A stretch of DNA of 64,000 bases from the sequence record PP886230.1. One strand, written 5' to 3'. Below are positions 38,775-60,297 of this stretch, piece by piece. The notes beneath the pieces are model-generated. The model saw nothing but the letters and a program-made list of their open reading frames with translations. It had not been told where the DNA came from and did no database searches. The first letter of the stretch is position 1. Each line of letters opens with the position of its first letter. A program made the position numbers and the translations under genes.

Positions 38775-38803
38775 TTGACATTCTTTCAGTACTGGTGTAC
38801 TAT
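38775..38803 (+). promoter_or_regulatory. sigma70 promoter for the minigene array (TTGACA-17-TACTAT)
   Basis: Only clear promoter seen in 38.7-43.6 kb; divergent from the RCC1 array. Confidence 0.7.
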
Positions 38804-38828
38804 AGAAGGAATATAAGGAGAACTACAC

Positions 38829-39056
38829 ATGACAAATACTCTTAAGTACTACCTCAATACTCTAAATGAACTAGAGTACGGGGAATTTCTCGCGGATAGT
38901 TCGTGGCTAATTGAGCTAAAAAATTATAATAGTCCAGGATGCACCCTTATGATGAACAATGCAATTGATACCCTCATTGTGAGTATTTTACACAGCAACA
39001 TCTGCGGGGATAGCAATAAACAATTATCAAAAATCTTAGTACTGCTATCTATATGA
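38829..39056 (+). CDS. Minigene array unit 1
   Basis: KYY start, ILVLLSI end; most divergent unit. Confidence 0.65.
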   Translation: MTNTLKYYLNTLNELEYGEFLADSSWLIELKNYNSPGCTLMMNNAIDTLIVSILHSNICGDSNKQLSKILVLLSI

Positions 39057-39256
39057 ATATCGAACAGTACTACATCGATGCACTACCAACAAAAGGTCTA
39101 CGTGAAAGCCTACTGCATACACAAACTAATTTCAAACACCTCAAACGTAGCCCTAAACTCCTGAACTCGTACAGGAATAATAACATAAGAAATGCTTTAC
39201 AAGGGGTAGAATGTATGCAATACTATTACATCCTTACCCTATTAATCGAGTACTAA
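39053..39256 (+). CDS. Minigene array unit 2
   Basis: MNIEQYY...YYILTLLIEY. Confidence 0.8.
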   Translation: MNIEQYYIDALPTKGLRESLLHTQTNFKHLKRSPKLLNSYRNNNIRNALQGVECMQYYYILTLLIEY

Positions 39257-39257
39257 T

Positions 39258-39467
39258 ATGAATACTGAACATAAAGAATTCTACACCAAATACCTTAGCA
39301 ACGAAGAACAATTGTTTCTAAGGAGTGTATCACCTGTAAGTACCAATACTCAATTCGGTAGAGATTGCTTTAATAATTGTATACGTAGTACTCTAGAAGC
39401 AATCGAATGCAATAACAAAAATATTATGTACTCAGGTTTAATAGGACTAATATATTTCTATGAATAA
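39258..39467 (+). CDS. Minigene array unit 3
   Basis: MNTEHKEFY...FNNCI; close paralog of unit 18. Confidence 0.8.
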   Translation: MNTEHKEFYTKYLSNEEQLFLRSVSPVSTNTQFGRDCFNNCIRSTLEAIECNNKNIMYSGLIGLIYFYE

Positions 39468-39654
39468 TCATAAAGATTTCTATTGTAGTAAACTACCCAA
39501 ACAAGAACAGCTATCATTCTCTTTAGCACCACCTATGAGAAAGGATAATCTGTATTATAATTACGATTTCAGGATGGTGACACGTTATGCAATAGAACAT
39601 CAGTTCCCTGAAACTAAGTACCGCTCTATCCTGAACCTCATCTTTAAGTTCTAA
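39460..39654 (+). CDS. Minigene array unit 4
   Basis: MNNHKDFY...YRSILNLIFKF. Confidence 0.8.
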   Translation: MNNHKDFYCSKLPKQEQLSFSLAPPMRKDNLYYNYDFRMVTRYAIEHQFPETKYRSILNLIFKF

Positions 39655-39706
39655 AAGGTACACCAGGGACCGAGTACTTTAATATAGTAAGGCTAATTAC
39701 ATTATA
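39655..39706 (+). pseudogene. Deleted minigene remnant
   Basis: Retains only the family C-terminus TEYFNIVRLITL-stop. Confidence 0.5.
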
Positions 39707-39892
39707 ATGAATCATATAAGCTACTACTACCAACAACTATCCGACAGAGACAAGTACAGTCACAACTCCCATGTGTGGTACTACAAACGCGGCAGTATAA
39801 GAGACAAACAACATTACTTCTGTATTTCTATTAAAGAAGCACTGACAACTAAGTACACGTACCGAGCAGTACTTAAACTTATTGAAATGTAA
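39707..39892 (+). CDS. Minigene array unit 5
   Basis: YRAVLKLIEM end. Confidence 0.8.
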   Translation: MNHISYYYQQLSDRDKYSHNSHVWYYKRGSIRDKQHYFCISIKEALTTKYTYRAVLKLIEM

Positions 39893-39902
39893 AGAGAATA
39901 CT

Positions 39903-40085
39903 ATGAACATTGAATTGTACTTAAGTAAATTACAGCCTGGCGATAGATTCATCTACAATAAGTTCGAATTCAACTACAAGAACGGGAGCAACAAATATCG
40001 TCGAGGATACCTATATACAAGCACAAGAGATGCACAAAACGAAAAGTACACATACAGAGAAGTACTTAAACTAATCTCTATTTGA
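39903..40085 (+). CDS. Minigene array unit 6
   Basis: YREVLKLISI end. Confidence 0.8.
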   Translation: MNIELYLSKLQPGDRFIYNKFEFNYKNGSNKYRRGYLYTSTRDAQNEKYTYREVLKLISI

Positions 40086-40093
40086 GGTAATAT

Positions 40094-40279
40094 ATGAATA
40101 CATTTGAGTACTATACCAATAAACTATCTATGCCTGAAAGATCTCATCTCTATGTGTGGAGAAATGCGTATAAAAGCGGCAATAAACTTATACAAAGAAA
40201 TTCCCTTACAGTGTGTACAAATTTAATTAAAGCAGAGTACCGCACATATATTGAAGTACTCAAACTGATAGCAATATAA
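40094..40279 (+). CDS. Minigene array unit 7
   Basis: MNTFEYY...YIEVLKLIAI. Confidence 0.8.
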   Translation: MNTFEYYTNKLSMPERSHLYVWRNAYKSGNKLIQRNSLTVCTNLIKAEYRTYIEVLKLIAI

Positions 40280-40287
40280 GGTACTCT

Positions 40288-40467
40288 ATGCAAGAATTCT
40301 ATATCTATAACCTCCAGCACAAAGATAGATACAACTATAATAAATTCCAAAGGTACTACACAGTCGGGAACAAAAGAGATAAAAAACGTTATCTACTCTC
40401 GTGTACAGTAGAAGCACAAAACGAAAAGTACACGTACAGAGAAGTACTTAAACTAATCTCAATCTAA
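40288..40467 (+). CDS. Minigene array unit 8 (59 aa, not in track)
   Basis: MQEFY...YREVLKLISI. Confidence 0.8.
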   Translation: MQEFYIYNLQHKDRYNYNKFQRYYTVGNKRDKKRYLLSCTVEAQNEKYTYREVLKLISI

Positions 40468-40474
40468 GGTAGAC

Positions 40475-40663
40475 ATGAACACTTTTGAGTACTACTTCAA
40501 TAAACTAAACCACATAGAACAAAGTATGCACCACACATTTATTCAGAACCATCAATCATCTTCACCTCTAATTAAAAACATATCGATTGAGATTATCACT
40601 ACCCGTGTACAGTCATCTGAACGTTATATGTATATTGATGTACTGAAACTCATCTCTATGTAA
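40475..40663 (+). CDS. Minigene array unit 9
   Basis: MNTFEYY...YIDVLKLISM. Confidence 0.8.
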   Translation: MNTFEYYFNKLNHIEQSMHHTFIQNHQSSSPLIKNISIEIITTRVQSSERYMYIDVLKLISM

Positions 40664-40671
40664 GGAATACT

Positions 40672-40851
40672 ATGCAACAATTCTATAGAGAACACATAAG
40701 CATTAAAGACCGTTTCATGTACGACACCTTCGTGAAGTACTACAAACTAGGAACAAAAAGTACTAAAAATATTAATCTCAATAGCTGCATTTATGCTGTA
40801 CTAACACAAGATAATCCCTACAGGGAAATCATTGCCCTGGCATCTATATAA
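40672..40851 (+). CDS. Minigene array unit 10 (59 aa, not in track)
   Basis: MQQFY...SCI...YREIIALASI. Confidence 0.8.
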   Translation: MQQFYREHISIKDRFMYDTFVKYYKLGTKSTKNINLNSCIYAVLTQDNPYREIIALASI

Positions 40852-40861
40852 AGGAAACCAA

Positions 40862-41521
40862 ATGAAACTTAATCCACACAGCAAACAATACCTTAAGCAC
40901 TTTAAATACCTCAACAGTATTCAAGCAGAATCTTTTACACCAGCATATACGTATCACCCAAATGTACTAAAGAAACGAAATAAAAAGAAAAAATCCAGAA
41001 ATGTTCTCGTATCTAAGAACCTCAAATCGTACTTGAAGAAAAATAATATAGCTCTTGCTTTTATTAATATCTATAATACTGATTTAAAAGTATTGAGTAC
41101 TAATACCAGCACAAAAGCACTAAAGAATGCATCTATCTATATACACATGGATAATATCCCGTGCACTATAATTCTATCTTTCGGGAATGTATACTTCTTC
41201 GGGAATTGTAATAGCACCCATGATATCAGTACTGCACAATTCCAAATCGGCGATATGTACTGCATGGGTTCAGAAAAAATACACGATAACATGCACTTCT
41301 TCCAAAAGCAACGTACTAACGAAACTGATACAGTACTGCAATTCCTAAAAGAACTACAAAACAAAGAATTAACACCAGAAGAAGAATTCATGTACAGTAC
41401 TGTAATCGATAATCCAGAACTCTATAAAAACGCGTACAATCTAACAAAACATGTACAGGAACTTATCAGTACTGATAAGAAATTTCATCACCTCATTACG
41501 TATATTTCAAACTATGTATAA
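40862..41521 (+). CDS. Unrelated 219-aa hypothetical protein inserted in the minigene array
   Basis: AGGA RBS; C-terminal EEEFMYS motif. Confidence 0.75.
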   Translation: MKLNPHSKQYLKHFKYLNSIQAESFTPAYTYHPNVLKKRNKKKKSRNVLVSKNLKSYLKKNNIALAFINIYNTDLKVLSTNTSTKALKNASIYIHMDNIPCTIILSFGNVYFFGNCNSTHDISTAQFQIGDMYCMGSEKIHDNMHFFQKQRTNETDTVLQFLKELQNKELTPEEEFMYSTVIDNPELYKNAYNLTKHVQELISTDKKFHHLITYISNYV

Positions 41522-41696
41522 AGAATACTACAAAGATAAAATCCCAATGCATCTACAACACCATATACCAAACGTTGCATTGGGTATCAAAGATCACGCA
41601 AAGATAATGTTCCAACAATGTACTAAGTACACGCTCATATACGATGATAATCCATATATGCTGTACTACGTAGTAATGCTAACATTCAGGTACTAA
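41514..41696 (+). CDS. Minigene array unit 11
   Basis: MYKEYY...FQQCT...TFRY. Confidence 0.8.
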   Translation: MYKEYYKDKIPMHLQHHIPNVALGIKDHAKIMFQQCTKYTLIYDDNPYMLYYVVMLTFRY

Positions 41697-41697
41697 T

Positions 41698-41877
41698 ATG
41701 AATACTTATAAAGAATTCTACCTCTCGTACCTTAATTCCGATATAGTAACATCCAATACATTCAGTACTAAAATTATCTATAATGAATTAATGAAAGAAT
41801 GTATTAAAGGTGCTATTAACCCTAAAGATACGTATGACTTGTACTATGCAGTACTAACCCTTGTTTTCACGAAATAA
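41698..41877 (+). CDS. Minigene array unit 12 (59 aa, not in track)
   Basis: MNTYKEFY...ECI...YYAVLTLVF. Confidence 0.8.
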   Translation: MNTYKEFYLSYLNSDIVTSNTFSTKIIYNELMKECIKGAINPKDTYDLYYAVLTLVFTK

Positions 41878-41885
41878 CACATAAT

Positions 41886-42077
41886 ATGAATAACCACATA
41901 GAATACTACATAGAGAAACTCCCAATGTATCTCCAACACCTTGTACCAACAGTACCATTGGGTATAGAAAAAAACTACGAAAAAGACTACTTCATTCAGT
42001 GCACTAAATCCTCGATATATATTGAAGACTATAATCGAGTACTGTATCACATCCTTTTACTAATATATAGGTACTAA
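41886..42077 (+). CDS. Minigene array unit 13
   Basis: FIQCT...LLLIYRY. Confidence 0.8.
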   Translation: MNNHIEYYIEKLPMYLQHLVPTVPLGIEKNYEKDYFIQCTKSSIYIEDYNRVLYHILLLIYRY

Positions 42078-42078
42078 T

Positions 42079-42261
42079 ATGCACAAAGAATACTACACAC
42101 AATTTCTCCCCAGCATTTTTGAACACTACGCCAGATACAAAGTCCCTATGGATAACGATTTGGCAGTACTGGGATTCAATAACTGCATAGAACGAAGTAT
42201 AGAAAATAGTAGTAGTTATGACCAGCTATATAACACTATCCTACTTATATTCAGGTACTAA
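42079..42261 (+). CDS. Minigene array unit 14
   Basis: MHKEYY...FNNCI...LLIFRY. Confidence 0.8.
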   Translation: MHKEYYTQFLPSIFEHYARYKVPMDNDLAVLGFNNCIERSIENSSSYDQLYNTILLIFRY

Positions 42262-42262
42262 T

Positions 42263-42451
42263 ATGCATAAAGAATACTACACAAAATATTTCCCAATGTA
42301 CCTCAGTACTAATCTATTAGATAAACCTCGCGGTATCAATGCACAAAACGATAAAGTGTACTTTACTATGTGCACTAAAGCATGTATACTAGATTTTGAC
42401 AGCTATCATCGAGTACTGTATCATACCCTGTACCTAGCTTTCGTATTCTAA
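42263..42451 (+). CDS. Minigene array unit 15
   Basis: MHKEYY...FTMCT. Confidence 0.8.
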   Translation: MHKEYYTKYFPMYLSTNLLDKPRGINAQNDKVYFTMCTKACILDFDSYHRVLYHTLYLAFVF

Positions 42452-42460
42452 AAGAACAAT

Positions 42461-42646
42461 ATGCATAAAGAATTCTACTTAAGCCATCTCGATCTAAACT
42501 CCCAAATGCTTATACCACTAATCCCAATAGATATCAAGGATAAGAAAAATACCGAACAATTCATTTACCATACACAGTGTGCGATCACCCCAAATTACAT
42601 TCCATATGAATTGTACTACATTATCGCCCTAATATATAGGTACTAA
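42461..42646 (+). CDS. Minigene array unit 16
   Basis: MHKEFY...LIYRY. Confidence 0.8.
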   Translation: MHKEFYLSHLDLNSQMLIPLIPIDIKDKKNTEQFIYHTQCAITPNYIPYELYYIIALIYRY

Positions 42647-42647
42647 T

Positions 42648-42833
42648 ATGCATAGAGAATACTACACACAATTTGTTAAAGGGAACTACAAATGTGCCGT
42701 ACCCAGAACCCCTTTAAATTCTCATGACCCAAGTACTATATTCTTGTTTAATGACGCAATACGTACAGTACTCAATACTAAAGATGAAGATGTGCAGTAC
42801 GTATTCTTACTATTACTTATATACAGACACTAA
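42648..42833 (+). CDS. Minigene array unit 17
   Basis: MHREYY...LIYRH. Confidence 0.8.
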   Translation: MHREYYTQFVKGNYKCAVPRTPLNSHDPSTIFLFNDAIRTVLNTKDEDVQYVFLLLLIYRH

Positions 42834-42838
42834 CTAAT

Positions 42839-43048
42839 ATGAATAAAGAACATAAAGAATTCTACTCCAAATACATAAGCCCCTCAGAACAAATGTTTCT
42901 AAGGACTACTCCACCTTTAAGTACTAATACATTTTTCGGCAGAGTATGCTACAATAATTGTATTCAAATGACTTTAAACGCAAATGAAGATGGTAACAGT
43001 ACTAACCTGTACTCCGGCATCATAGGTATACTATTCCTGTATGAATAA
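42839..43048 (+). CDS. Minigene array unit 18
   Basis: MNKEHKEFY...YNNCI; close paralog of unit 3. Confidence 0.8.
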   Translation: MNKEHKEFYSKYISPSEQMFLRTTPPLSTNTFFGRVCYNNCIQMTLNANEDGNSTNLYSGIIGILFLYE

Positions 43049-43229
43049 TTACAAAGACTTCTATTTGAATACACTACCTACTGTACTTTCTCTAAGTGCT
43101 CAATGTAAAATCCCCCTGGATAATGCTTACGCCAGATATAGCTATTCCATAACTGTTAATCGATGTATAGAGAATCATTGCAGTACTAACCAGTACTATA
43201 ACATAATCCTACTTATATTCAGGTACTAA
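43041..43229 (+). CDS. Minigene array unit 19
   Basis: MNNYKDFY...LLIFRY. Confidence 0.8.
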   Translation: MNNYKDFYLNTLPTVLSLSAQCKIPLDNAYARYSYSITVNRCIENHCSTNQYYNIILLIFRY

Positions 43230-43230
43230 T

Positions 43231-43413
43231 ATGAATAAAGAACATAAAGAATTCTATATACGAAAACTAACATTCGTCCCCGTAAGAATATATAAAGAAT
43301 GCGACCCAAGATTATACCTATGGCACTTCAATGAGTGCATAAAAGATTCTATATACCATAAGAACTATAAAGAACAATTGTGCTCAGTACTAACACTAGT
43401 ACTATCATATTAA
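43231..43413 (+). CDS. Minigene array unit 20
   Basis: MNKEHKEFY...FNECI. Confidence 0.8.
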   Translation: MNKEHKEFYIRKLTFVPVRIYKECDPRLYLWHFNECIKDSIYHKNYKEQLCSVLTLVLSY

Positions 43414-43428
43414 TTAATAGAGAATACT

Positions 43429-43620
43429 ATGTATAAAAACTTCTATATAAGTAAACTAAAAGAAAATGAACAAGTATGGATTAGATCTATAATTCCACTG
43501 GCATTTAATAGATATGCATTTAACAGATGTACCGAGATTGCTATAGACCCTTATAATATTAAAGAGAATGTACAGTATAATCAGTACTACTATATCTTAA
43601 TGCTTATATATAGAAAGTAA
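43429..43620 (+). CDS. Minigene array unit 21
   Basis: MYKNFY...FNRCT...LIYRK. Confidence 0.8.
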   Translation: MYKNFYISKLKENEQVWIRSIIPLAFNRYAFNRCTEIAIDPYNIKENVQYNQYYYILMLIYRK

Positions 43621-43637
43621 TTAAACACATAGAGACA

Positions 43638-43727: not shown

Positions 43728-44030
43728 AAACCCCGTAATCATAGGTAGTCATAAGTAATCATATATAAACATTTATATGAGCACCGTAGAATCACAGAAT
43801 GATTATATATGATTCAGTACTGATTAGTATAGACAAGATTGCTCAAGAATGCACGGAAATGTGTGTGAATGATTCAGTACTGATATGCCACTAAGTAGGC
43901 AGAGGAAGTCTGCCGTACTTTGTAGTTTCCAAGCTCCTTTTCCATTTTGTAAATTACATCAAATGTAATCAAAAGTAATCACGCAATGATTAGTACTGAA
44001 TTATTACTTTCACCTTAATTACAATTACCC

Positions 44031-44050
44031 TTTTACCCTTCGGGGTAAAA
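44031..44050. terminator. Perfect hairpin TTTTACCC-TTCG-GGGTAAAA
   Basis: 8-bp stem with cUUCGg loop; role uncertain. Confidence 0.5.
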
Positions 44051-44258
44051 TTCAATTACCCCTTGAGGCTCCAGCAAAAAGTTGGTTAGTACTCCATCCT
44101 AAATCTCGATCCTAAAAATTTTGGAGTACCTATGAAATAAAAGTTGGATCTTCGAAAGTTGAAATTTACGTTGGGACGTTTATGATTTGTGGGATATAAT
44201 GATGTTTGTAGACGGGTAGTTCTCAAGAATATCAGTACTGAATGGTGAAAGAAAGTTA

Positions 44259-44390
44259 TTGACATTATGATTCAGTACTGTATAATGTTTTACATAGAGA
44301 GATGAGTTGCCGCAAACAATTCATTCACTCTACCTCCTGTCGTGAGACAGTACAGAAAGATAGTTCCTCCAATGGGTGGTACATCTTTTT
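44259..44390 (+). ncRNA. Promoter-driven ORF-less ~100-nt RNA with three hairpins
   Basis: TTGACA-16-TATAAT; ATGAGTTG/CAATTCAT; CTGTC-GTGA-GACAG (GNRA); terminal stem plus TTTTT. Confidence 0.5.
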
Positions 44391-44691
44391 GAACCTCATA
44401 TGAAAATTGTAATAACAGTACTGATATTAACAGAATGGTGTCAGTACTGATTTTAATCTAAAGCATTATGCCACCAGCACAAGCTGGTGGATTCCCTCTA
44501 ACAGTATTCAGTACTACATGATAGTCTTCATCCTCCTAGGGTAACATAGTGAGGGCTATGATGGCAGTACTGAATACTCCCTTTCAAAAGATAGATCTAT
44601 GGTATAGTACTGACGGATTTTGGGCGTAGTTACCCTGGATGGATTTTGGACGTAGATATGTCTAGCCCTCCAGAAGTCTGGAAGTAAAGAT

Positions 44692-44794
44692 GGCTATCCA
44701 TCTAGACGGCTAAACGGCTAGATTTCTGGATGGCTAGACGTTTGGACGGCTAAACGGCTAGATGGGTACACGTCTGGAAGTATAGACGGCTAAA
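44692..44794. repeat. Iteron-like repeats GACGGCTAAA(CGGCTAGAT) at 44705, 44745, 44785
   Basis: Exact 40-nt phasing; seven GGCTA cores in ~100 nt. Confidence 0.8.
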
Positions 44795-44965
44795 TCAAAA
44801 TTTTATTTTGTTTTTCCAATAGTTCCCCTACCGCGTGGGGATAGTTTCCCCGCAGTATCTGAAGTTAGATTTTTCTGAATCTGGAATCATTATCTTATAA
44901 ACTGGGGGCAATGTCAACGGCCTGGCCGGATATTTTTAAAAATTTTTTCAGTACTGAATTTTGGG

Positions 44966-45232
44966 CGTAACTATGCACCCGATGGGCTTGAGTCTTTCTC
45001 GACTTGATGGAACTATTATACAGTACTGAAAAAATAAAGCAATACCCTGGAAGCAAAAAAGTTTTAATTAATTTGCTTGCTATCCTGGGCCGGACTATGG
45101 TACTATATTTCAGTACTGAGAAAGTGCGTTTACCTGCTAGGGTGCGGGAGTCTATCCTTTTTTTATATCTTGAATTTTGGACGGATCTTCCCACCCCCTG
45201 GGGTATCCGCTTTCTCGCGTCTATGTAGTAAT
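44966..45232. ncRNA. sRNA family B copies 1-3 (minus 44966-45009, plus 45110-45160, minus 45180-45232)
   Basis: Each follows its own promoter; core CCC-NNN-GGGTG; copies 2 and 3 are variants. Confidence 0.5.
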
Positions 45233-45410
45233 TATACGCTTTTTCAGGATCAAGTCAATACCTAAAAACAAAATAATTGAAAATAATTTAACGCGTTTAA
45301 ACGGCCCGTAACGCCCTGGATTGTTGGGAGTGGTGCAAATGTATAGCTTAGGTGTATTAATGCGTTAGAATGCGTCTGAGGCCGTTTTATGGGGTGTAGT
45401 AGTGATTTGG

Positions 45411-45503
45411 TTGATTCAGTACTGAATAATAGTACTCCTATATAGAAAGATAGTTCCCCTGGATTGATTCAGTACTGAATAATAGTACTCCTATATAGAA
45501 AGA
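45411..45503 (+). repeat. Exact 40-bp direct repeat (45411-45450, 45464-45503), each copy with two AGTACT
   Basis: TTGATTCAGTACTGAATAATAGTACTCCTATATAGAAAGA x2. Confidence 0.9.
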
Positions 45504-47054
45504 AAACTATTTTAAAAGTATTTGTAGAAAGTACTTGCACCGTACTGATAAAAGCGTATAATGTTTTACATCGAGAGCGGGAACACTTCCCGCTACACTT
45601 TAAGAGAGATTAATACGATGGCAACTCAAATCACCAAAATTATTGCTAACCTGGTTAACTTCCGCGACGAGATGAAAGATCTTCCGGCGGCGACGGTTAA
45701 AACTCACATTGACGCATACCGCGAACTGATTAAAATGCTGCCGCTTAAGCGTGAACAATACGCCGCTACCGTGATGCTTGATGCGATGATCCATAAGATG
45801 ATCGCCAGTGATTTGACGATGGTTTATCAGTATATGGGCGAAAATTTCGCGGTGTGTAGTAAGCCAGTACCAGGGATGGCAACAACTGAGGAATTGCACG
45901 GCTTAAACTTAAAACAAGATGCATGGGATAATATGCCTCGTTTCCTGGTATGGGCTGACAGTGGCAAAATTTACAAATAAGTTTAATAAAGTACTTGCAA
46001 ACTATGTTTAATGGCGTATAATGTTTTACATCAGGTGGGGAATAGTTCCCCACTATATAAGAGGATTAAAAAAAAATGGCTAAATCAAAAATGTTCTTAG
46101 GTCACAAAAACAAAACTCATTGGAATGTAAGCCTGTGGATTAATAACGATGAGGGATTGTATCGGTTGGCCCTGGACTTTATTGCCGCCAATACTAATCG
46201 CAATGATGCGGCCCGTCATATGATGTTATTTTTAGAACAGACTGGACAAGATAAAACACCGGACGGATTCAAATATAGCACTACTGCGATCCGTGCGGCG
46301 ATGGTTGGAATGTAATAGAATAGAATTTATTTAAAGTACTATTGCACGGGGATAGTACTTTATAATAGTGTTTTATTCATACACCAACGATAAGGGCAAC
46401 AGCATGAATATTAAGTATTTTGCGACGCGTGAACAAGCTCGGATCGCCGCTCGCCAGGACGGGGCAACGTTTAAAGATATGGGCGTACAATCGGAACGTG
46501 GTAAACGTTGGGCCATTGTAAAGCGTAGTACCGCCAGATCATTACAGTACTGGTTAGCGGCCTTAAAAAGTCCCGATAGTGTATCGCGTCGAGTGGTAGA
46601 AATAAAGCTCGACCGAAAGGGCAACCGCGTGACCGTGTACCGTACTAAAAAGATTGCAGTACTTGAATAAAAAGTACTTGCAAACTATGTTTAAAGGCGT
46701 ATAATGTTTTACATCGAGAGCGGGAACTCTTCCCGCCTATAACCTGGAGTAATAAAAATGACTAATATGTATATGACTGAAGTTAAAACCGTAAAAGATA
46801 CTACCACGAATAAAACTACTTACTTACAGCGGATCTGTGGTGTATGGCAACGTATCAGCAAATCAAAGTACTTTAAATTAACATCATATGCAAACCGTTC
46901 TGATTCATTCAGTACTGAAATAAAAGGTAATAAAGTACACCAATACGGCACTTATTATTATTACAGCCTGGACGCGATTGCAGTATAAGCAGTTTACAAA
47001 TCTTTACAATTGCCGGTATTGACTTATTTTGTCAGTACTGGCATAATGTATTCA

Positions 47055-47160
47055 TTGGCAGATAAGCCGTAGCCCATAGGGTGCGGGAGTGTATCTATAG
47101 AAAAATTAGTTTAGTATAGTTACAATTGTGCACCCGGTGGGTTAGCTGTTGTCATGGGGT
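47055..47160. ncRNA. sRNA family B copies 4 (+) and 5 (-), convergent
   Basis: Cores at 47071-47084 and 47130-47143; promoters at 47019-47047 (+) and 47163-47191 (-). Confidence 0.6.
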
Positions 47161-47272
47161 ATATTATGCCAGTACTTGATAATGCTGTCAATACTTTTTT
47201 TTACTATCCAGTACAGAAAACTATTTTTAAAAAGTACTTGCAAACTATGTTTAAAGGCGTATAATGTTTTAC

Positions 47273-47348
47273 ATCAGGACGGGGGAACGAAATAAGTAAC
47301 TTCCCGTTAAGTAGCCCAGGAGTAAGGCACACGAAAAACTCCCCTGAT
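47273..47348 (+). ncRNA. Structured RNA family A copy 1
   Basis: ATCAGG/CCTGAT closing stem, two inner stems, no ORF, followed directly by the next promoter. Confidence 0.6.
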
Positions 47349-47416
47349 AAAATAGTTTGACAAATGTTTTTAAAAGCGTATAATACTTACATCAACTACT
47401 GAATGAGGGTTACAAA

Positions 47417-48028
47417 ATGAAAACTATCACTACTACTACTTTCGTTATGGATTTTTCTGAATTGAACGCAGAACAAAAAACGTCAGCTATCGAACTGGTT
47501 CGGGAACGTGAAAAAAACTCAAACGACAATTATTTTTCTGAAAGTGAAATTGAATACTATAAAGAAACAGTACTACCGGAATATGGCATTAATGACGCTG
47601 AAATACAATTCAGTGGCTTTTGGTCCCAGGGTGACGGTGCATCAATCAGTACTGACCACGTTGACGCAGTGAAGTTTTTACGCAAGGTAAGAGCATTAAC
47701 TAAGTATCGCTCAATCCGTCACTTGCTGAATGAAGATGATTTGGCGATGAGTGTAAAGCGTTCGCACTCCCACTACTCGCATGAGAATACTGTAAGCGGG
47801 TACATTGAATCGGCTTACACTGATTTAACCGCAAAACAAGAAACGTTAGTTAATGAGCTTGAGGAACTACTCACTGATACTATTCGTGAATTGTCCCGCA
47901 AGTTGTACCGTGATTTAGAGAATGCATATGAGGATCAATTCACTACTGAAAACATTACGGCACTGATTGAGGGTAACGAGTATCAATTCAATGTTATTGA
48001 TGGCGTAGTGGAATCAATCGAATATTAA
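47417..48028 (+). CDS. Conserved phage/plasmid protein with FSGFWSQGDGA motif
   Basis: Family recalled as often auto-labelled antitoxin of a TA stability system; the label is unverified. Confidence 0.55.
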   Translation: MKTITTTTFVMDFSELNAEQKTSAIELVREREKNSNDNYFSESEIEYYKETVLPEYGINDAEIQFSGFWSQGDGASISTDHVDAVKFLRKVRALTKYRSIRHLLNEDDLAMSVKRSHSHYSHENTVSGYIESAYTDLTAKQETLVNELEELLTDTIRELSRKLYRDLENAYEDQFTTENITALIEGNEYQFNVIDGVVESIEY

Positions 48029-48647
48029 TTTAAAAAGTACTTGCAAACTAAGTTTAAAAGCGTATAATACTTTATATCGAGAGCGGGAATAGTTCCCGCT
48101 ACTAATGAGGAATACTACAAATGAATACTTTTACCTTCGCTCAATTGAACGCCCTGGATGTATTGTCTGATGCTTTGCGGGATGCAACTGAAAGCGGTTT
48201 ATTTGACAATGTTGACATTCACCCTGATGTAATTAATAATTTTTGTGATGCTATCGCAGAAGTACTGGAAGATCTAAAAAAATAATAGAAAGTACTTGCA
48301 ATTAGTTTTTAGTACTGTATAATGTTTTACATAGAGGGGAGAAATGGTTCTCCCTGGTAATGAGGAAAATACAATGGCTAATATCACTACTCTTTCCCAA
48401 CTGGAAGCACTGGTTAAATCTATGCGGGAACATGCCGACAATATCGGCGTAAAAGATCCAGCCGTTTGCTTCTGCGACGAATTGAATGATGATACCCTGG
48501 TAATAGCAGAAGTCCAGGACGTTTCTAACTATTCCTCGCGTTACACTGGCGGCGTAGCAAATAAAGGTGACTTCTGTTTATACCTTACCAAATAACAACG
48601 CGGGGAGATAATAACTCCCCGTTACTTTTTCAGTACTGAATCATTTA

Positions 48648-48700
48648 ATAGACGGATCTCGGCACCCGGTGGGTTAGTGACTGTTTCGTCTTGATGTAGT
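48648..48700 (-). ncRNA. sRNA family B copy 6
   Basis: TTGACA-17-CATAAT on the minus strand; AGACG...AACCC-ACC-GGGTGC...CGTCT. Confidence 0.6.
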
Positions 48701-49718
48701 AATTATGCCAGTACTGGATGCACTTGTCAACAACTATTTTTCAAATACTTTTTATTAAAATACTTGCTAATAGTTTTTAAACGCGTATAATGTTTTGCAT
48801 AGGGGGAGCGGTTCCCCTGGTAACTAAGGAATAATAAAATGCTTGAACAAATCAAATCAACGTCTGCGAATGTAACGGGAACGGTTGTACACTTTACTAG
48901 TGATGAATCGCGGGGCGTTCCCTATTGTGCTGTACATGTAAACACTGATGGCAACTACTGGTTTACGGTTTACGGATCATATTCATTTGGACGACCAGGG
49001 CATCAAAAAATTCTGGATAAAGTACAGCCAACGGGTAAAAATATCACGGCTGAAATGTTTTATAAAAAATCATAAAGTACTTGATAATAGTTTTTAGTAC
49101 TGTATAATATTTTACATCGCAAGGGGGTAATGGTTCCCCCTGGTAACTAAGGATAATCAAATGAAAGTTGCATTCATCGCCCTGGCTTTATCTGTTTCCT
49201 CTTTTGCTGTTAATGCGTCGTTAGATGTAAGTAGTGAAAAATTCATTCAGTGCACTGTAGCAATGACAGATGAAAGTACTGGCGAGATTGTATTAAAGGA
49301 TCTGGAGATTCAGCCGGAAGCATTTAAAAACGGCCCGTTCCATGAAGAAGACGAAAACGGTAGCACAACAATTTATTATGATGCCAGTACTAAACGCGGG
49401 TCGGTCACTGTTATGGATACTGAGAAAGTAACTCATACTGGCGTTATTAATTGCCGTTGATAGATACTACGGGGTAACATCATGACTAAGCGAATTGTTT
49501 TACTTAACGAAAGCAGTACTACACAACTACTTAACGCCGTGCATTATGATATTGAAACGAGCGTTAATCTTATCAGTACTGTAGTACTGTTGGACACTGG
49601 AAAGGTCGCCAATGATAAAGCGATTGCAGGTATACTAACGGATCTTGAGCCTGGTAGCAGTGCACCAATAACGTTAAATGGTAAAGTGTTTAATATTTTA
49701 CTCACTGATTAAGTACAT

Positions 49719-49742
49719 AGCCCACCTGGTGGGCTTTTTTGT
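49719..49742 (+). terminator. Terminator TAGCCCAC-loop-GTGGGCT-T tract (also ~50447 and ~54609)
   Basis: Hairpin plus U tract after a stop codon. Confidence 0.8.
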
Positions 49743-49829
49743 TTTTGTAGTATCGTAGTACTGAGATACTTTGAAAATAGTTTTAAAAAAGTAGTTGACA
49801 TTACCGCAGAAAAGCGTAGAATGTATTAC

Positions 49830-49902
49830 ATCAAGACGGGGAGCACTAAGTAGACCGCCAGTAAGTCGAACGAAAAACTGGACACGTCGAGAAAACTTTG
49901 AT
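49830..49902 (+). ncRNA. Structured RNA family A copy 3, leader of the H-NS-like gene
   Basis: Shares TAAGTAG and stem-AAG-N4-ACGAAAA-stem with covarying stem. Confidence 0.5.
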
Positions 49903-49943
49903 ACACTAATAAACGTAAACTAAACTTTAATTGAGGATTTATA

Positions 49944-50426
49944 ATGGCTAATGTAAAATCATTCATCAAAGCACTGGTAGCAAATGAAACTAACGTCGCG
50001 GCTGAGATCCTGGCTGAACTGGATAACGATACCATGAAAGCGGTACGCAATAATTTTAACATCGCGTACAGTACTGCGAAAGAACTACAAGCAAATAAAG
50101 CGGCAGAAATTGAAGCGGCAAAGGCGGCCCGTGAAGCAGAACTACAAGCAACAATCGAAAGTATCCAGGCGGCGGTGTCTGGATTGGATCTGGAAGTGGT
50201 TGTGGAAATGGCACATAAAGCCCTGGCGGTTAAGTATGGTGAAGATAAGCCAGAATCTAAACCCAAAAAATGGATTCAGGAACGCGTAGCGGTAGTACTG
50301 GACAACGGGGAAGAATATCTGATTCCGGTGCGTGGTAACTGTATTGCGGTAGTACTGGACGCTATCAAAGAAAGCGGTATGACTCGCGAGGAATGGATCG
50401 AAGCTCATCGCAAAGTTGAAGCATAA
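49944..50426 (+). CDS. H-NS/StpA-like nucleoid protein with degenerate DNA-binding motif
   Basis: Coiled-coil N-terminus and basic linker. C-term VVLDNGEEYLIPVRGNCIAVVLDAIKESGMTREEW aligns by eye with H-NS [35 protein letters not shown]. Confidence 0.7.
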   Translation: MANVKSFIKALVANETNVAAEILAELDNDTMKAVRNNFNIAYSTAKELQANKAAEIEAAKAAREAELQATIESIQAAVSGLDLEVVVEMAHKALAVKYGEDKPESKPKKWIQERVAVVLDNGEEYLIPVRGNCIAVVLDAIKESGMTREEWIEAHRKVEA

Positions 50427-50710
50427 CAATTAAAGTACTGAATCACTAGCCCACTGTATAAGTGGGCTTTTTTGTGTTTATCGTTTACCAGGCCACCAGC
50501 ACCGCCTAGAAACGATTCTAACGCATTAAACGGATTATCTGATGCATTGCCCTAGCTGGTGGCGTTAAGGCTGTAAGAACGCGATTGAGAGCGTTTAAAG
50601 TATTTTGCAAAAAGTAATAAAAAGTACTTGAACGATTAAGAGATTAGCGTATAATGTTTTACATCGAGAGGGGGAAACGGTTCTCCTTCCAAATCAAAGG
50701 AATCAAAACA

Positions 50711-53700
50711 ATGGCTATTATCATTACTCGCGTATCTGGTACTACTGGCAACGAACAAGTAGTTGCAGTCATTACGAACAAGGCAGGTGCGGAATTGCAA
50801 AATGCAATGAATACCTGGGCCGTTAATGAGTTCGGTCAGTGGGCAAGTGTAGCATACATTGAAACCTATCAAGTGCCGTCGATTAGTTTAACTGATTTGG
50901 GCGTTGAGCGTATCCTTTGCCTTGATGAATTAAATTAAAAAAGTACTTGCAAAGTAAATCGAATAAAGTATAATACATTACATCAAGGGGAGAAATGGTT
51001 CTCCCCACTACAAGGAAACTAAAATGGCTATCATTACTAAAATCAAAGTTAGTAAATCACTGGTTAAACTTGAAGAAGTGAAAGAAGGTTATAAAGTATC
51101 TTGGTGCGGTATGTATCGGACGTTCGCAGATATAGATGATGCGATCAATTATTACACTGACACGGTTAAAAACTTTGTTCGTGCTGATGTGGTTATGGCA
51201 GTGGCAACATATAAAGCATCAAAAGAAAGTAAGTAAAAATATTATCACAGTACTATTGACATAGTTTGATAGTACTGGCATAATAACTTTTATCAAGACA
51301 ACTAAGAGGAAATTAAAATGGCTAACATCAATACTATAGCAGCACAAAATATCAACCTGTCTTCTGTTGAAGTTGTACATATTGCCGCTCGGCGTTGGTT
51401 CCAGGCTTCATATGGTAACACTTATTTCTCTTTAAGTGTAGACGTAGAAATTGATGGTAATTTTATTGAAGTAGTAAACGTGCCGTTCCAATATGGATAC
51501 GGGGATCATTTTGACACTGTAGCAATGGAAGAATTTAGCAAGGTTATTAATATGGAAGGTAAAGAGTTTTTACGCGGTTCTTATCTTTCCCGTTTTTGCC
51601 GTGATAATAATATCACTGTTTATAGTTCTGTTAGTGATGTTAAACGCAAAAAAGATCTTTAATTAGCTTTACTTTATGCAGATACTTTGATATAGTGTCT
51701 GCATAGGGGAAAGAAATTAAATTAACTTAAGAGGATAGTATAATGAAAAATATCAGTACTTTAATCGATGCAGGTACTCATGTTCGTCGGTCTATGGTTG
51801 CAACCAGTACTACAAAACAAGTAGCGAGCGGTTATCTTGTATTTGTGCACGATGGTAAACTCCTGGAACGTTCAATCAATTTTGATGTTAAAAACAATTG
51901 CCGTTTTATTATCTTTAAGCGTGAGCAATATAAAATTGATTTACCAGCAAAGCCCATTAGTGGGGCGTACAACGTGCAATCATTGTTTGAACGTCAACCA
52001 TACACCTATTAATCAAAACATCGTTAGCGGTCGATTCAGGCCGCTTATATTGGGGATTATACCATGAACGTTAATCAAGTACTGAATGAGATCGAAAGCA
52101 TCATTAAACCGATGAAGCGTACTGATGCTATGTTAACACCGGAAGAATGCCGCCTTTATGAGCGTTACAGCGTCGAACAAGTCCAGGCAATGGCTATGGC
52201 TACCCCAGCCGTTAAACCGCCTGAGAATGCGTTACAGGACGTTACAGGGGATTATATCATCAATCCAGTACTAGGGAAGATGGCTGCAATCACCGAAGAT
52301 CAACAAGACTACTTAAGCCAGTACTTAAAAGGTTAATTAATATGCTTACTGTACAGGATAAGATCGACATCTTAAAGGTTAATATGTATGTGATTGATGC
52401 AGAACCTGGTAAAGTATTTGCATACGATGATAGTACTGTAAGCGATTTCTACTATAGCCAGGCCGTGGGGGATCTTTCTGTACAGTCGGTTATTGAAAAC
52501 GTAGTTAATGCAGCGTATGAGCATTTACTTTCAAATAGTACTTGCAATTAGTTTTTAAACGCGTATAATGTTTTACATCGAGAGCGGGAATAGTTCCCGC
52601 CTCACTTTTAAGGAATATGAAATGAAAGCATCAAAAAAGAGTACTAACAAGAAAGCACGTTCAACCTTAGATGGGGTATTCCCTTTACGTTTCGTTGATG
52701 AAGTGGTTTCCTACCCGCCTGGCCTTACTCCTGAGATGGTAGAAAGTTTGCGTAAATCTAAAAAATAGTACTTGCAATTAGTTTTTAGTACTGTATAATG
52801 TTTTACATGAAGGGGAGAAATGATTCTCCCCAATAACAGGAGAAACAAAATGAAACAATACAACGCTCGGTTTGATGTTACTATCGGTAACGGCAAAGGT
52901 CAATTCTCTTTCAGTACTCGCCGCAGTTATACAGAAAACTTCCTGCGTAATTGTGCATTGACCGCCGCTCAAATTAAACATTATTTTCAGGCTAAAAAAT
53001 GAGATCATTAGCTTATTACAGTTCGGCCCTGGTCGGTGCATTGATCGCGGCGTTGTTAGTAACCTATCTATTCTTTATGGTGATTTAAATGAATCCTAAC
53101 GGTATAATTTACAGTACTCCTAAAACGAAAGCAGACAAGGTAAACGCTAAAAAAGCGAAAGTAAAGGAGTACATCAAACAAGGAATGACACGAAAGGCGG
53201 CGATTCTAAAAGCTAAAAATAAATGAAAAAGTGGTTGACTTCGGTCAGCCATTTTGCTATTATATATTCATTGAGAGATAGCTCACTAGCCCACAGGGTG
53301 CAGGAGTGTATCTATTGTATAATGTTTGAGTACTGAAAACTATTTTAAAGTATTTGATAAAAAGTACTTGCAAACTATCTCAATAAGCGTATAATGTTTT
53401 ACATCGCAAGGGGAAACGGTTTCCCCTAGTAATAAGGAAACGAATCATGACTATCTCAATTGCTCAATCTAACTTTGAAAATGAAATCATCGCCCAGGCA
53501 CTGCGTTTAAATGATGGTCGGGCCGAAATCAATTACGGTTTCAATTCAGGCGGTTGTGAAAAATATCAGTACTTTGTAACGGCTGATGGCGGTGTACTGG
53601 GCATCAATACAGTTATTGTAAACATACAGAAAATTAATTTCAATGATCCAGACGATAGCCAGTTTTACATCACTGGCGTAGACGTGAACTATGAGGATGA

Positions 53701-54905
53701 CTCACTAACTGATGACCACACTGGCGAGAAGTTAGAAAGTGCATACGGTGAAGATGATTATCAGTCCGGTCCAGAAGATTTCGAATAATATTAAAAAATA
53801 GTTTGACAATAGATTATAGTACTGTATAATAGTTTACATCAAGGGGAGAAAAACTTCTCCCCACTAACAGAGAGAGAAAACAAAATGGCTAATATCCGGT
53901 CGAAATTAAAAAATGCAAAACAAGTTTTATTTTCAGATCATGAATACTTTAATAAAGATATTACAGGAGTTACAAGTATCAAGGAAGTAAAAGAAAAAAC
54001 CGGCGTTTTGTGTGATGTGCGATTAGTTGGGACATTTGGGAATAACGTGCTATATCGCTGTGGTGATTACAATTTTACACTGACTATCATTAACTAAAAA
54101 TATTATCACAGTACTATTGACATAGTTTGATAGTACTGACATAATAACTTTTATCAACTACACTACTAAGGAATTAAAAATGGCTATCATCGCAAAAACT
54201 GAAATCATCGGCCTGGATTCTATCATCATGACGTTTGAAGATCAAAAAGGTATGTATGTGGTTTCCTATGGTGATTATGTTCGGGAGTATGAAACGGTAG
54301 ACGAAGCCTTTGAAAGTTACATTCGCCAGGTGAATAAAGCATACGACGACTACCGCTAAAATATATTACCAGTACTATTAAAGATATTGACAACGTTTGA
54401 TAGTACTGTATAATAAGTTTTATAAACAGTAGTTAACTTAACCTAAGAGAGAAATAAAATGATCGCACTGGATTCATTCATCGACGCAGTACTGGCAAAA
54501 ACTGGCGAGGATCTGACCGCAGAACAATACGCGATGATCGAACAATGTCAACAGGACGGTAAATCGGTGAAAGATACTGTTAAGATTATCCGCAAGATGT
54601 AAGATTATAGCCCACTGGTTAACGCTGGTGGGCTTTAATTCATTACCCTATACAATGCCAGTACTAAACCGTTTATCTCGTTAGAATGCGTTACAGGACG
54701 TTTACCAATGATTAGCATGAAATCAGTACAAAAACAAATAGAAACATTATCAAAAATTAAACGTAAACAGTACTCCTTAGAATATACAATCAATGGTAAC
54801 TATCATCTAATGAAAGAAAATAATTTTATAGTCATTGATGAATCATTGCAAATCATTAGTATAGTACTGAAAGCATTAATCAATGACAGAAAAAAATTAA
54901 AATAA
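50711..54905 (+). other. Early small ORFs 50711-50938, 51024-51236, 51318-51662, 51743-52012, 52064-52336, 52342-52551, 52622-52768, 52850-53002, 53447-53788, 53885-54097, 54180-54359, 54708-54905
   Basis: Promoter cassettes and RBS; no confident function. Confidence 0.7.
53270..53315 (+). ncRNA. sRNA family B copy 7
   Basis: AGATA-GCTC...AGCCC-ACA-GGGTGC...GAGT-G-TATCT after a terminator-promoter. Confidence 0.6.
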
Positions 54906-54944
54906 ACTATTGACAATATCATCCAGCACTGGCATAATACTTAC

Positions 54945-54992
54945 ACCAAGACGAGAACGTCACTAACCCATAGGGTGCACAAATGTAACTGT
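54945..54992 (+). ncRNA. sRNA family B copy 8
   Basis: TTGACA-17-CATAAT at 54910; core AACCC-ATA-GGGTGC. Confidence 0.55.
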
Positions 54993-55236
54993 ATAATATT
55001 GATCAAAAAATGATCTGATCAATACTTGATCAATTTGCGTAAAGTAGTATAATTCTATGCAGTTGGTTAGACGAAAGGTTATGATTAGTAGTGCAAGTGT
55101 ATAAAAATTTTCATGGTGTATCGTTCCGCACATATGGGGATGAATATGTGGTATCATGTGGATTGGAAAAAGTAAGAACAAGTAATATTATTGTCGCATT
55201 ACAGTACTATAGTATTTTTATAATGAGGTTAAAATA

Positions 55237-55494
55237 ATGGCTGTAGGATTCGCGAAAGATGGGGCCGAGCAAGACGAGATTAACGCAGTGATTCAGGCCG
55301 CCGTTAACCACGCTAGAAAGCAAATTAACGCACAAATAGAATCACTGATACATTGCCTCGACTGCGGCGATATAATCCCTGAGAAACGACGCCAGGCCGT
55401 TAAGGGATGTAAGTACTGCATAACTTGCCAGGAGGATCATGATAGTACTTTTAAACGTCCCCCGCGTAATTGTTGGCATAGATCTATGAGATAA
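55237..55494 (+). CDS. TraR/DksA-family C4 zinc-finger protein (YbiI-like)
   Basis: G[FW]AxD N-terminus; CxxCGxxIPExRRxAVxGCxxCxxCQ. Confidence 0.9.
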   Translation: MAVGFAKDGAEQDEINAVIQAAVNHARKQINAQIESLIHCLDCGDIIPEKRRQAVKGCKYCITCQEDHDSTFKRPPRNCWHRSMR

Positions 55495-55557
55495 AAAGTA
55501 TTGACAGTACTGAAAGATAGTGTATAATGTTTTATATCTTAACTGAGGATAGTAATC

Positions 55558-55914
55558 ATGGGAATACAACATATCACGCGTACTACTGACAATGGCGAGA
55601 TCACTGGCTATCAAGTACAGGGCAAAGTAGCACAATTGCAGTACTGGTTTGTGAAACGTGGAATCATTGCACCGGATCTTGATTATGACCGTGTAGCGTT
55701 TATTGATTCTCTTTATGTTGATCCTGATAGTCGGGGCAATGGTGAAGGTAACGAATTAATGAATGCCTTTATTGATGCCGCCGATGATTCAGATTGTATC
55801 ATTTTAGAATGCGATACGGGAGAAGATAACGCCTTTAATCTTAAAGAATGGTACGAAGGTTTCGGATTCGAGGTACTGATCGATAGTGAATATCCTATCA
55901 TGATTTTATCATAG
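55558..55914 (+). CDS. GNAT-family acetyltransferase
   Basis: IDSLYVDPDSRGNGEGNELM (motif A) and WYEGFGF (motif B). Confidence 0.85.
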   Translation: MGIQHITRTTDNGEITGYQVQGKVAQLQYWFVKRGIIAPDLDYDRVAFIDSLYVDPDSRGNGEGNELMNAFIDAADDSDCIILECDTGEDNAFNLKEWYEGFGFEVLIDSEYPIMILS

Positions 55915-57307: not shown

Positions 57308-57350
57308 ATAGAAACAATTCAGCCCACCGGGTGCATAAATGTATCTATTA
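57308..57350 (+). ncRNA. sRNA family B copy 9
   Basis: ATAGA...AGCCC-ACC-GGGTGC...TCTAT. Confidence 0.6.
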
Positions 57351-57426
57351 TATGCTGGTGGCTAGTACTGAAAACTATTTTTAAAAAGTACTTGCATTGT
57401 ATTTAGAATCAAGTATAATGTTTTAC

Positions 57427-57499
57427 ATCAGGACGGGGAACGAAACAAGTAACCCCGTTAAGTAGTCCAGGAGTAAGACATACGAAAACCTCCCCTGAT
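57427..57499 (+). ncRNA. Structured RNA family A copy 2
   Basis: Near-copy of 47273-47348; substitutions keep the stems paired. Confidence 0.6.
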
Positions 57500-60244: not shown

Positions 60245-60297
60245 AAAAAGATTAAAAAAGGGATTGACTCCGGTCAGTCCCTTTGCTATTATATATT

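Follow-up and report, generated by a model that had tools for sequence, protein, structure and literature searches.

The last 64 kb of the sequence record of Escherichia phage vB_EcoM_E9.1 (E9.1; PP886230.1, 367,851 bp; Asteriusvirus, 121Q/PBECO4 group), hereafter the window (64,000 nucleotides (nt); record position = window position + 303,851), contain on the + strand at 38829–43620 a tandem array of 21 small open reading frames (ORFs), each starting with ATG and encoding 59–75 amino acids (aa). An initial annotation made from the sequence alone had pointed out this array, and its existence is confirmed, with the corrections given below. Comparison with related phages makes it very probable that the array is a protein-coding family whose units turn over by recombination. 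The fuller explanation that we favor, and place slightly on the probable side of even, is an early-expressed operon family of small binder-like accessory proteins evolving by birth and death. That these proteins bind host targets, with host takeover or counter-defence as the likeliest class of function, is a tentative proposal to which we give somewhat less than even weight.

The array region (38700–43700) was 100% identical to PP886230.1 by megablast and matched 33 further records of 121Q/PBECO4-like jumbo phages at 84–99.6%, giving 34 Asteriusvirus records in total, and the hosts of these phages are Escherichia and Salmonella. All 21 units (u01–u21) are annotated as ‘hypothetical protein’ in PP886230.1. 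The array is not contiguous as had been claimed, because a 219-aa ORF of the same operon, overlooked in the initial annotation, lies between u10 and u11 and overlaps u11 by 8 nt; this arrangement was found in all of the ten phages that we compared, which include the divergent JNE01 and Turkey5. Otherwise, the unit starts are spaced by 184–247 nt and the gaps between units range from −8 to +15 nt, except for a 52-nt spacer between u04 and u05. The junction AGG TAC TAA T ATG, in which the last two codons, the stop codon, one base and the next start codon are joined in 13 nt, had been quoted; we found five exact copies and one copy with a single mismatch, whereas in units 5–10 the stop codon overlaps an AAGG/GAGG motif located 7–8 nt ahead of the next ATG. 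Tandem Repeats Finder detected no DNA-level tandem array at the locus; therefore, the repetition sits at the level of the proteins and the junctions. The features are listed below with the evidence for each, in window coordinates (HMM, hidden Markov model; AF2, AlphaFold2; pLDDT, predicted local distance difference test; pTM, predicted template modeling score; A and B, the subfamilies described below).

38775..38803, + strand: sigma-70-type promoter-like site (−35, 17-nt spacer, −10; 10/12 matches) 5’ of u01; consensus scan
38815..38820, + strand: strong Shine-Dalgarno (SD) motif for u01; invariant block in the nine-phage alignment
38829..39056, + strand: u01, 75 aa, conserved single-copy leader, membership unproven; once in 10/10 phages
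39053..39256, + strand: u02, 67 aa, divergent third subgroup; hhalign against B 98%, E 9e-15, full length
39258..39467, + strand: u03, 69 aa, B, close paralogue of u18; phmmer E 1e-28
39460..39654, + strand: u04, 64 aa, B, paralogue of u19; phmmer, HMM
39707..39892, + strand: u05, 61 aa, A; phmmer, HMM
39903..40085, + strand: u06, 60 aa, A; phmmer, HMM
40094..40279, + strand: u07, 61 aa, A; phmmer, HMM
40288..40467, + strand: u08, 59 aa, A; AF2 pLDDT 69, all-alpha
40475..40663, + strand: u09, 62 aa, A; phmmer, HMM
40672..40851, + strand: u10, 59 aa, A; phmmer, HMM
40862..41521, + strand: embedded 219-aa ORF; phrog_29152, E 3e-113
41514..41696, + strand: u11, 60 aa, B; phmmer, HMM
41698..41877, + strand: u12, 59 aa, B (divergent); HMM B E 9e-18
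41886..42077, + strand: u13, 63 aa, B; AF2 pLDDT 90.8, pTM 0.74
42079..42261, + strand: u14, 60 aa, B; phmmer, HMM
42263..42451, + strand: u15, 62 aa, B; phmmer, HMM
42461..42646, + strand: u16, 61 aa, B; phmmer, HMM
42648..42833, + strand: u17, 61 aa, B; phmmer, HMM
42839..43048, + strand: u18, 69 aa, B, paralogue of u03; phmmer, direct repeat
43041..43229, + strand: u19, 62 aa, B, paralogue of u04; phmmer, direct repeat
43231..43413, + strand: u20, 60 aa, B (divergent); HMM B E 3e-19
43429..43620, + strand: u21, 63 aa, B, last gene of the unique region; phmmer, HMM
43894..64000, strand not applicable: right copy of the 20,107-bp direct terminal repeat, as deposited; identical to record 1–20107, 0 mismatches

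As judged by sequence similarity, 20 of the 21 units are homologous and fall, in tandem, into three subgroups. In an all-versus-all phmmer comparison of the 21 units, 75 of the 420 ordered pairs scored E<1e-3, compared with none in five composition-preserving shuffles, and two blocks emerged, A (u05–u10) and B (u03, u04 and u11–u21). Within B, u03 and u18 (E 1e-28) together with u04 and u19 (E 1e-9) form a duplicated pair, which is also visible as a 246-nt direct repeat of 74% identity. The two subfamilies proposed in the initial annotation were thus recovered, except that u02 does not group with units 3–4 but represents a third, divergent subgroup. The link between A and B was given as 71% by hhalign with the units of the window alone, and rose to 96% (E 4e-9, full length) with deep profiles built from 127 non-redundant units of the ten phages; with the same profiles, the u02 group was linked to B at 98% (E 9e-15). 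Furthermore, the HMMs of both subfamilies match two database proteins. The subfamilies have otherwise diverged to 20–30% identity, with the ends conserved across them. For u01, an iterated profile search converged on ten orthologues only and the best family link, to the u02 group, reached 21% (E 1e-3), so that the claim of 21 paralogous minigenes holds for 20 of them and u01 is a conserved single-copy leader gene of uncertain origin. No further family members were detected elsewhere in the window in any frame. The described pattern of conserved ends and hypervariable cores is borne out in subfamily B, in which the mean column entropy is 1.34 bits at the N end, 2.33 bits in the middle and 1.88 bits at the C end, but the variability exists between paralogues only, and orthologues are conserved.

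Several observations give strong though indirect support to the units being real, translated and constrained proteins. First, we paired each E9.1 unit with its best counterpart in the nine other phages and pooled the substitutions over pairs of at least 65% identity (Nei-Gojobori method, NG86); the pooled ratio of nonsynonymous to synonymous substitution (dN/dS) was 0.25–0.53 in all seven informative phage comparisons (for example, the proportions of synonymous and nonsynonymous differences, pS and pN, were 0.296 and 0.090 against phage A4). Split by region, dN/dS was 0.27 for each of the two terminal stretches of 15 codons and 0.46 for the part between them; by this measure, the middle of the unit is less constrained, without overall positive selection. 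Purifying selection that extends to the middle of orthologous units contradicts the active diversification that had been suggested for the cores. Second, an SD-like motif was found ahead of 11 of the 22 starts, but of the 79 other ATGs within the array only 6 had one (Fisher p=3e-5), and most starts that lack such a motif overlap the upstream stop codon. In composition, the units have mixed charge, 5–16% tyrosine and 0–3 cysteines each, and the isoelectric point (pI) of the subfamily B units ranges from 5.3 to 9.4. A membrane or secreted (holin- or spanin-like) nature was rejected, as the highest mean Kyte-Doolittle score over 19 residues was 1.18 and most units scored below 0.8. In phage TH47, two units, one from A and one from B, are each interrupted once; since the TH47 record carries an UNVERIFIED flag, sequencing error and genuine decay are equally likely causes.

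The AlphaFold2 model of u13, computed from a 50-sequence alignment, is a confident helical fold (pLDDT 90.8, pTM 0.74) with helices at residues 3–10, 14–17, 30–45 and 49–62. The columns that are 90–100% hydrophobic across subfamily B lie in the N-terminal helix, helix 3 and nearly the whole C-terminal helix, and the B columns between the conserved ones have an entropy of 2–3.4 bits. Since the conserved columns fall in the predicted helices, the ‘conserved ends’ mainly correspond to the fold core, which agrees with the common scaffold that the initial annotation had envisaged. The subfamily A model (u08, 12 sequences) is likewise all-alpha, with helices at 2–7, 11–26, 29–44 and 51–57, but its pLDDT is 69; because of this low confidence, a fold shared by all units rests mainly on the profile homology.

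Searches of Pfam, NCBIfam and PDB sequence profiles gave no credible match for the units, and a match to the EB1 C-terminal motif (E 4e-4, one unit only) was dismissed as chance. Foldseek with the u13 model found no match in the PDB (best E 4.8) and only the family’s own members in BFVD, and the subfamily A model retrieved one own-family entry (E 2.4). In PHROGs v4, 13 of the 21 units match the unannotated phrog_11711 (best E 1.6e-27) and the other eight miss the E 0.01 threshold; part of the family has therefore already been catalogued. None of these searches, nor the protein searches below, matched a known family with a fixed copy number, in line with the earlier expectation. A word-indexed search of 5.8 billion proteins gave 37 clusters, and an exhaustive HMMER search of 1.84 billion representatives gave 40 clusters, all of ~60 aa except one low-complexity false positive (P0064, 531 aa with seven matched stretches), a repeat protein that we considered and discarded as a fused array. 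Every named source of the clusters is either an Asteriusvirus phage or an E. coli assembly contaminated by phage, and according to tblastn the family is contained in 36 phage records, each of which comes from Escherichia or Salmonella. Within the databases searched, the family is confined to Asteriusvirus. No paper describing the array was found in our literature search. Neither a transfer RNA search nor an Rfam search returned an element at the locus.

The unit content differs markedly between relatives. Across the ten phages, between 14 and 22 units per genome were detectable by HMM. Eight closer relatives share one layout (leader, u02-type unit, B units, A units, 219-aa gene, B units), whereas JNE01 and Turkey5 have interleaved A and B assignments and units that are only 30–57% identical to those of E9.1. 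Orthologues are present or absent in a mosaic pattern across the phages; for example, TH47, BF17 and ELP-22 each carry a counterpart of u07 with 96–100% identity, but the best match to u07 in 121Q, PBECO4, slurp01 and A4 is only 37–43% identical. The junctions (a unit end plus the next unit start; 58–82 nt, 62–83% identical) are the best-conserved DNA inside the array. When E9.1 was aligned with five relatives by blastn, 21 of the 22 unique homology-block ends were located within 45 nt of a unit boundary, compared with ~47% expected at random; this clustering is partly inherent, as alignments run on into any conserved junction, but is still what whole-unit replacement predicts. The description of the units as cassette-like is supported by this variation in copy number and by the position of the breakpoints.

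Additional evidence came from a database protein (P0002) that is a hybrid of u13 and u15. Its first 70% matches u13 at 86% identity, its last 16 residues match u15 at 88% and u13 at 62%, and a u16 orthologue follows it directly on the 3’ side in two independent metagenome contigs (L013, L014). The gene order and the switch in similarity indicate an in-register fusion in which the intervening unit was removed. Among the ten isolate genomes, we observed no clear recent chimeras, and half-unit matches were mostly of low identity. As for a dedicated diversifying machinery, no reverse transcriptase was detected when the eight larger ORFs of the window other than the RCC1-like ones were scanned against Pfam (a partial test, limited to the window), the array holds no template/variable repeat pair (the longest direct repeat being the 246-nt, 74% identical one), and no inverted repeat was found in it. 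Ordinary unequal homologous recombination therefore explains the variation. A diversity-generating retroelement was rejected, given the absence of a reverse transcriptase among the scanned ORFs and of a near-identical template/variable pair. So was a CRISPR-type array, given the null results of Tandem Repeats Finder and Rfam; the repeat-spacer analogy drawn earlier describes the layout, but the ‘repeats’ are coding junctions that are only 62–83% identical.

The initial annotation had placed the array behind a single sigma-70 promoter. A computational consensus match is indeed conserved upstream, and the −35 hexamer, its spacing and the strong SD motif 5’ of u01 are invariant in nine phages including JNE01 and Turkey5. 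The lack of promoter enrichment inside the array fits a single operon. The first 20,107 bases of the record are identical to window 43894–64000 (0 mismatches); therefore, 273 bp separate the end of u21 from the right direct terminal repeat. In the relative fEgEco12, a ~21-kb terminal repeat was confirmed by restriction digests (PMC13070987). The + strand of the repeat contains 109 promoter-like sites versus 65 ± 9 expected, including twelve perfect 12/12 sigma-70 consensus sites whose spacer is mostly 16 nt, as well as 26 terminator-like sites versus 13 expected, and almost every small gene of the repeat seems to have its own promoter. An 8-base late-type promoter pattern modeled on a phage T4 consensus, to which we give little weight, does not occur in the array and occurs twice in the window versus 14.5 expected. 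In the distant relative PA5oct, growth needs the host RNA polymerase and the genes of the repeat are transcribed early (PMC7318152). Based on the invariant promoter, the promoter-dense adjoining repeat and the analogy with PA5oct, early expression is a reasonable inference, and the operon is probably expressed early, as had been proposed.

Taken together, we propose the following mechanism. We read the locus as one polycistronic operon in which a gene encoding a soluble, all-alpha protein of ~60 aa has been duplicated in tandem to about twenty copies, together with the u01 leader and the embedded 219-aa gene. Host RNA polymerase would transcribe the operon early from the conserved sigma-70-type promoter toward the terminal repeat, which has itself the look of an early region, and translation would be coupled from unit to unit. 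The family evolves by birth and death: a conserved junction comprises the C-terminal helix codons, the stop codon, the ribosome-binding site, the start codon and the codons of the N-terminal motif, and unequal homologous recombination at the junctions deletes, duplicates, fuses or replaces whole units in register; in-register loss, gain and swapping of units explains why closely related phages carry different unit sets. The variable surface of each paralogue may bind a different host or competitor target, in takeover or counter-defence. The units pair a conserved core with a variable surface, each orthologue is under purifying selection, and units turn over rapidly between near-identical phages, a combination that would be expected of partner-specific accessory proteins.

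Several points weigh against the accessory-binder operon or parts of it. The units, which the initial annotation had taken as plausible inhibitors or decoys of host defence proteins, have no similarity to any characterized inhibitor and no tie to a host target or defence system, and our literature search found no transcriptome for Asteriusvirus. The promoter is a 10/12 consensus match only, and promoter-like sites inside the array are not enriched (30 versus 34.7 expected in shuffles). The membership of u01 in the family is unproven, dN/dS between orthologues exceeds 1 in two units (on few substitutions), and the low-confidence A model places its helices at positions matching those of B except for the second helix. 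Moreover, of the six subfamily A units all but u09 are basic (pI 9.2–9.6), to which nucleic-acid binding would also fit, and the C-terminal helix is almost wholly hydrophobic, which could mean oligomerization or docking to a common partner.

The 219-aa ORF is represented by 23 protein clusters, all Asteriusvirus-like, and has no relative in Pfam, PDB or NCBIfam; neither the ORF nor its C-terminus showed kinship with the units by HMM or hhalign, and the label ‘prefoldin subunit 5’ given to a relative in one metagenome source was unsupported here. On the − strand at 24611–38725 lie twelve tandem RCC1-like paralogues, including a short, fragment-like ORF (25539–25763). This RCC1-like array is divergent from the minigene array, with a shared 103-bp intergenic region, and the number of its genes varies between relatives. 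Phage phAPEC6 has eleven RCC1-like genes, and a DNA-organizing role has been speculated for the family (PMC7247149).

The alternative that survives best, though we regard it as unlikely, is that the units are phage-directed architectural or nucleic-acid-associated proteins, perhaps homo- or hetero-oligomers through the C-terminal helix, which associate with the DNA or RNA of the phage or act together with the RCC1-like or 219-aa proteins, and do not target host proteins. The basic subfamily A units, the nearly all-hydrophobic C-terminal helix, the divergent pairing with a 12-member family of speculated DNA organizers and the conservation of the 219-aa gene inside the operon in 10/10 phages would all suit such a role, as would an over-represented palindrome in the window (described below) that implies an abundant DNA-binding or DNA-modifying activity. 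However, the charge of subfamily B is mixed, no fold match to DNA-binding proteins was obtained, and a high turnover of units between near-identical phages is atypical for such components; in addition, the array products (gp540–gp545) go unnamed in the main text of the paper on the virion proteome of phAPEC6. An adaptor arrangement, in which the conserved ends dock to one partner (the 219-aa protein or a host hub) while the variable middle recruits targets, is less probable still. It would account for ends that stay conserved across subfamilies otherwise at 20–30% identity, and the 219-aa gene would be co-transcribed and keeps its position in all ten phages, but the conserved hydrophobic columns are located in predicted helices and are more simply explained as the fold core.

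A functionless or nearly neutral expansion, in which duplicates persist because the junctions recombine readily, would be consistent with the high turnover and with many units being dispensable in some relative; we consider it very improbable, as the retained orthologues are under purifying selection and an array of 14–22 units has been kept in every phage compared, including JNE01 and Turkey5. An actively self-diversifying library, whether a repeat-spacer-like or a retroelement system rewriting the unit cores, is scarcely credible despite the conserved junctions, variable cores and differing unit content, because orthologous cores are under purifying selection (dN/dS 0.46), the eight window ORFs scanned (a partial test) gave no reverse transcriptase, the array has neither template/variable pair nor inverted repeats, its diverged junctions are coding and form no Tandem Repeats Finder array, and in-register recombination accounts for the differences. 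Equally hard to credit is that the ORFs are incidental to a DNA- or RNA-level element at the repeat edge (for packaging, recombination or a structured RNA), for although the array stops 273 bp from the repeat boundary and AGTACT sites cluster in unit ends, dN/dS is well below 1 in seven comparisons, the ORF boundaries, start codons and SD motifs are maintained, the fold predicted from 50 sequences is confident, and no Rfam family, transfer RNA or DNA tandem repeat was detected.

Returning to the operon of accessory proteins, we compared it with known systems. The multigene families (MGF) of African swine fever virus and the terminal families of poxviruses (‘genomic accordion’) consist of tandem terminal paralogues that act on host responses. 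Like them, the array consists of tandem paralogues near a terminus whose copy number varies by unequal recombination and whose members are singly conserved, but collectively dispensable and variable. Unlike them, its units are ~60 aa long, lie in one operon and are apparently translationally coupled, and the virus realm and host are different; there is no sequence or fold relation. The array shares with the RCC1-like array of E9.1 a tandem expansion, adjacency and a variable copy number, but the RCC1-like proteins are beta-propellers of ~380 aa from a known superfamily, to which the units are unrelated. It resembles anti-CRISPR and other anti-defence islands in the very small size of its proteins, their novel folds and their fast turnover between close relatives; in contrast to those islands, which hold unrelated proteins and usually a helix-turn-helix regulator, the array is one homologous family in which no regulator was identified.

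The host-takeover module of phage SPO1 and the pre-early genes of phage T5 are early takeover blocks in or beside long terminal repeats. The repeat genes of PA5oct (PMC7318152) resemble the array in being small genes at a repeat with host-type promoters and rightward transcription. The blocks of PA5oct, SPO1 and T5 are made mostly of unrelated genes with their own promoters, whereas the array is a single paralogous family behind one promoter. Bacillus phage G carries ~35 copies of a zinc ribbon (PMC7824862), which parallel the array in that a small protein of a jumbo phage has expanded to a large number of copies within a restricted lineage; the array differs in being all-alpha, without a metal-ligand pattern (0–3 Cys), strictly tandem in one operon and of a different family. 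By analogy, the closest counterparts in the way the array works would be the terminal multigene families of large DNA viruses of eukaryotes, together with the lineage-specific expansions of jumbo phages. It is an ordinary multigene family that belongs to no named family beyond an unannotated PHROG, and not a new category of system.

A second array lies outside the window, right after the left copy of the terminal repeat, at record positions 20205–25969 of PP886230.1, where 26 consecutive + strand ORFs of ~65–85 aa mostly overlap their neighbors by a few bases. Twenty-five of these ORFs group together by homology (E<1e-3 for 171 of 325 pairs), and the group showed no relation to the family studied here. 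Tandem minigene families therefore lie on both sides of the terminal repeat. We consider it rather unlikely, though worth stating, that the two arrays flanking the repeat form a recombination-ready cassette store of early inhibitors, in which each junction would double as a translational coupler and a homology arm, and co-infecting Asteriusvirus phages would swap whole units in register and so quickly re-match their set to the defences of local E. coli.

Most jumbo phage genes lack a known function, and the locus is a clean and unusually large case of a jumbo phage building and reshuffling tiny accessory proteins, with ~20 copies here and at least 25 in the second family. The in-register turnover of cassettes, which is well supported by sequence comparison, offers a concrete mechanism for the ‘hyperplastic’ regions of large phage genomes. 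If the units are early host-directed binders, the family would present dozens of natural variants on one ~60-aa scaffold of new fold, useful for finding host targets and for protein-binder design. If the two arrays are a cassette store, they would be a phage counterpart of the terminal families of eukaryotic viruses, on a previously unseen four-helix mini-fold, and if the units are architectural proteins, they would bear on the organization of 350-kb genomes.

Apart from the gene content, the hexameric palindrome AGTACT is strongly over-represented. It occurs 291 times in the window compared with 21.9 ± 4.2 in dinucleotide shuffles (13-fold), exceeds every other hexameric palindrome of the window by fourfold, and the longer CAGTACTG occurs 63 times versus 0.86 expected. 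Inside the array AGTACT is found in all three codon phases; over the array and the repeat its density roughly doubles (densest in 40000–64000), and it is equally enriched (5–8 per kb) in every Asteriusvirus locus sampled. Our literature search found no paper on this excess. AGTACT may be a binding, modification or recombination site.

An ORF-poor stretch of ~1.9 kb (43621–45560), in which no gene is annotated in the equivalent regions of 121Q and A4, spans the start of the right terminal repeat and holds 12 of the 63 CAGTACTG sites. It contains a perfect sigma-70 consensus site (44259–44286), a hairpin with a 14-bp stem of which both arms carry CAGTACTG (44416–44449) and a small hairpin at the repeat boundary (43895–43914). 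Both copies of the late-type pattern mentioned above (9742–9749 and 10391–10398) are located just 5’ of + strand ORFs starting at 9786 and 10415, again with little weight. Finally, a perfect hairpin of 28 nt is present in three identical copies in the repeat (57266–57293, 60257–60284 and 62517–62544) and in one variant copy (53228–53255). This repeated hairpin is followed by a −10-like hexamer and contains a −35-like hexamer inside its stem, so that terminator-like and promoter-like elements overlap.

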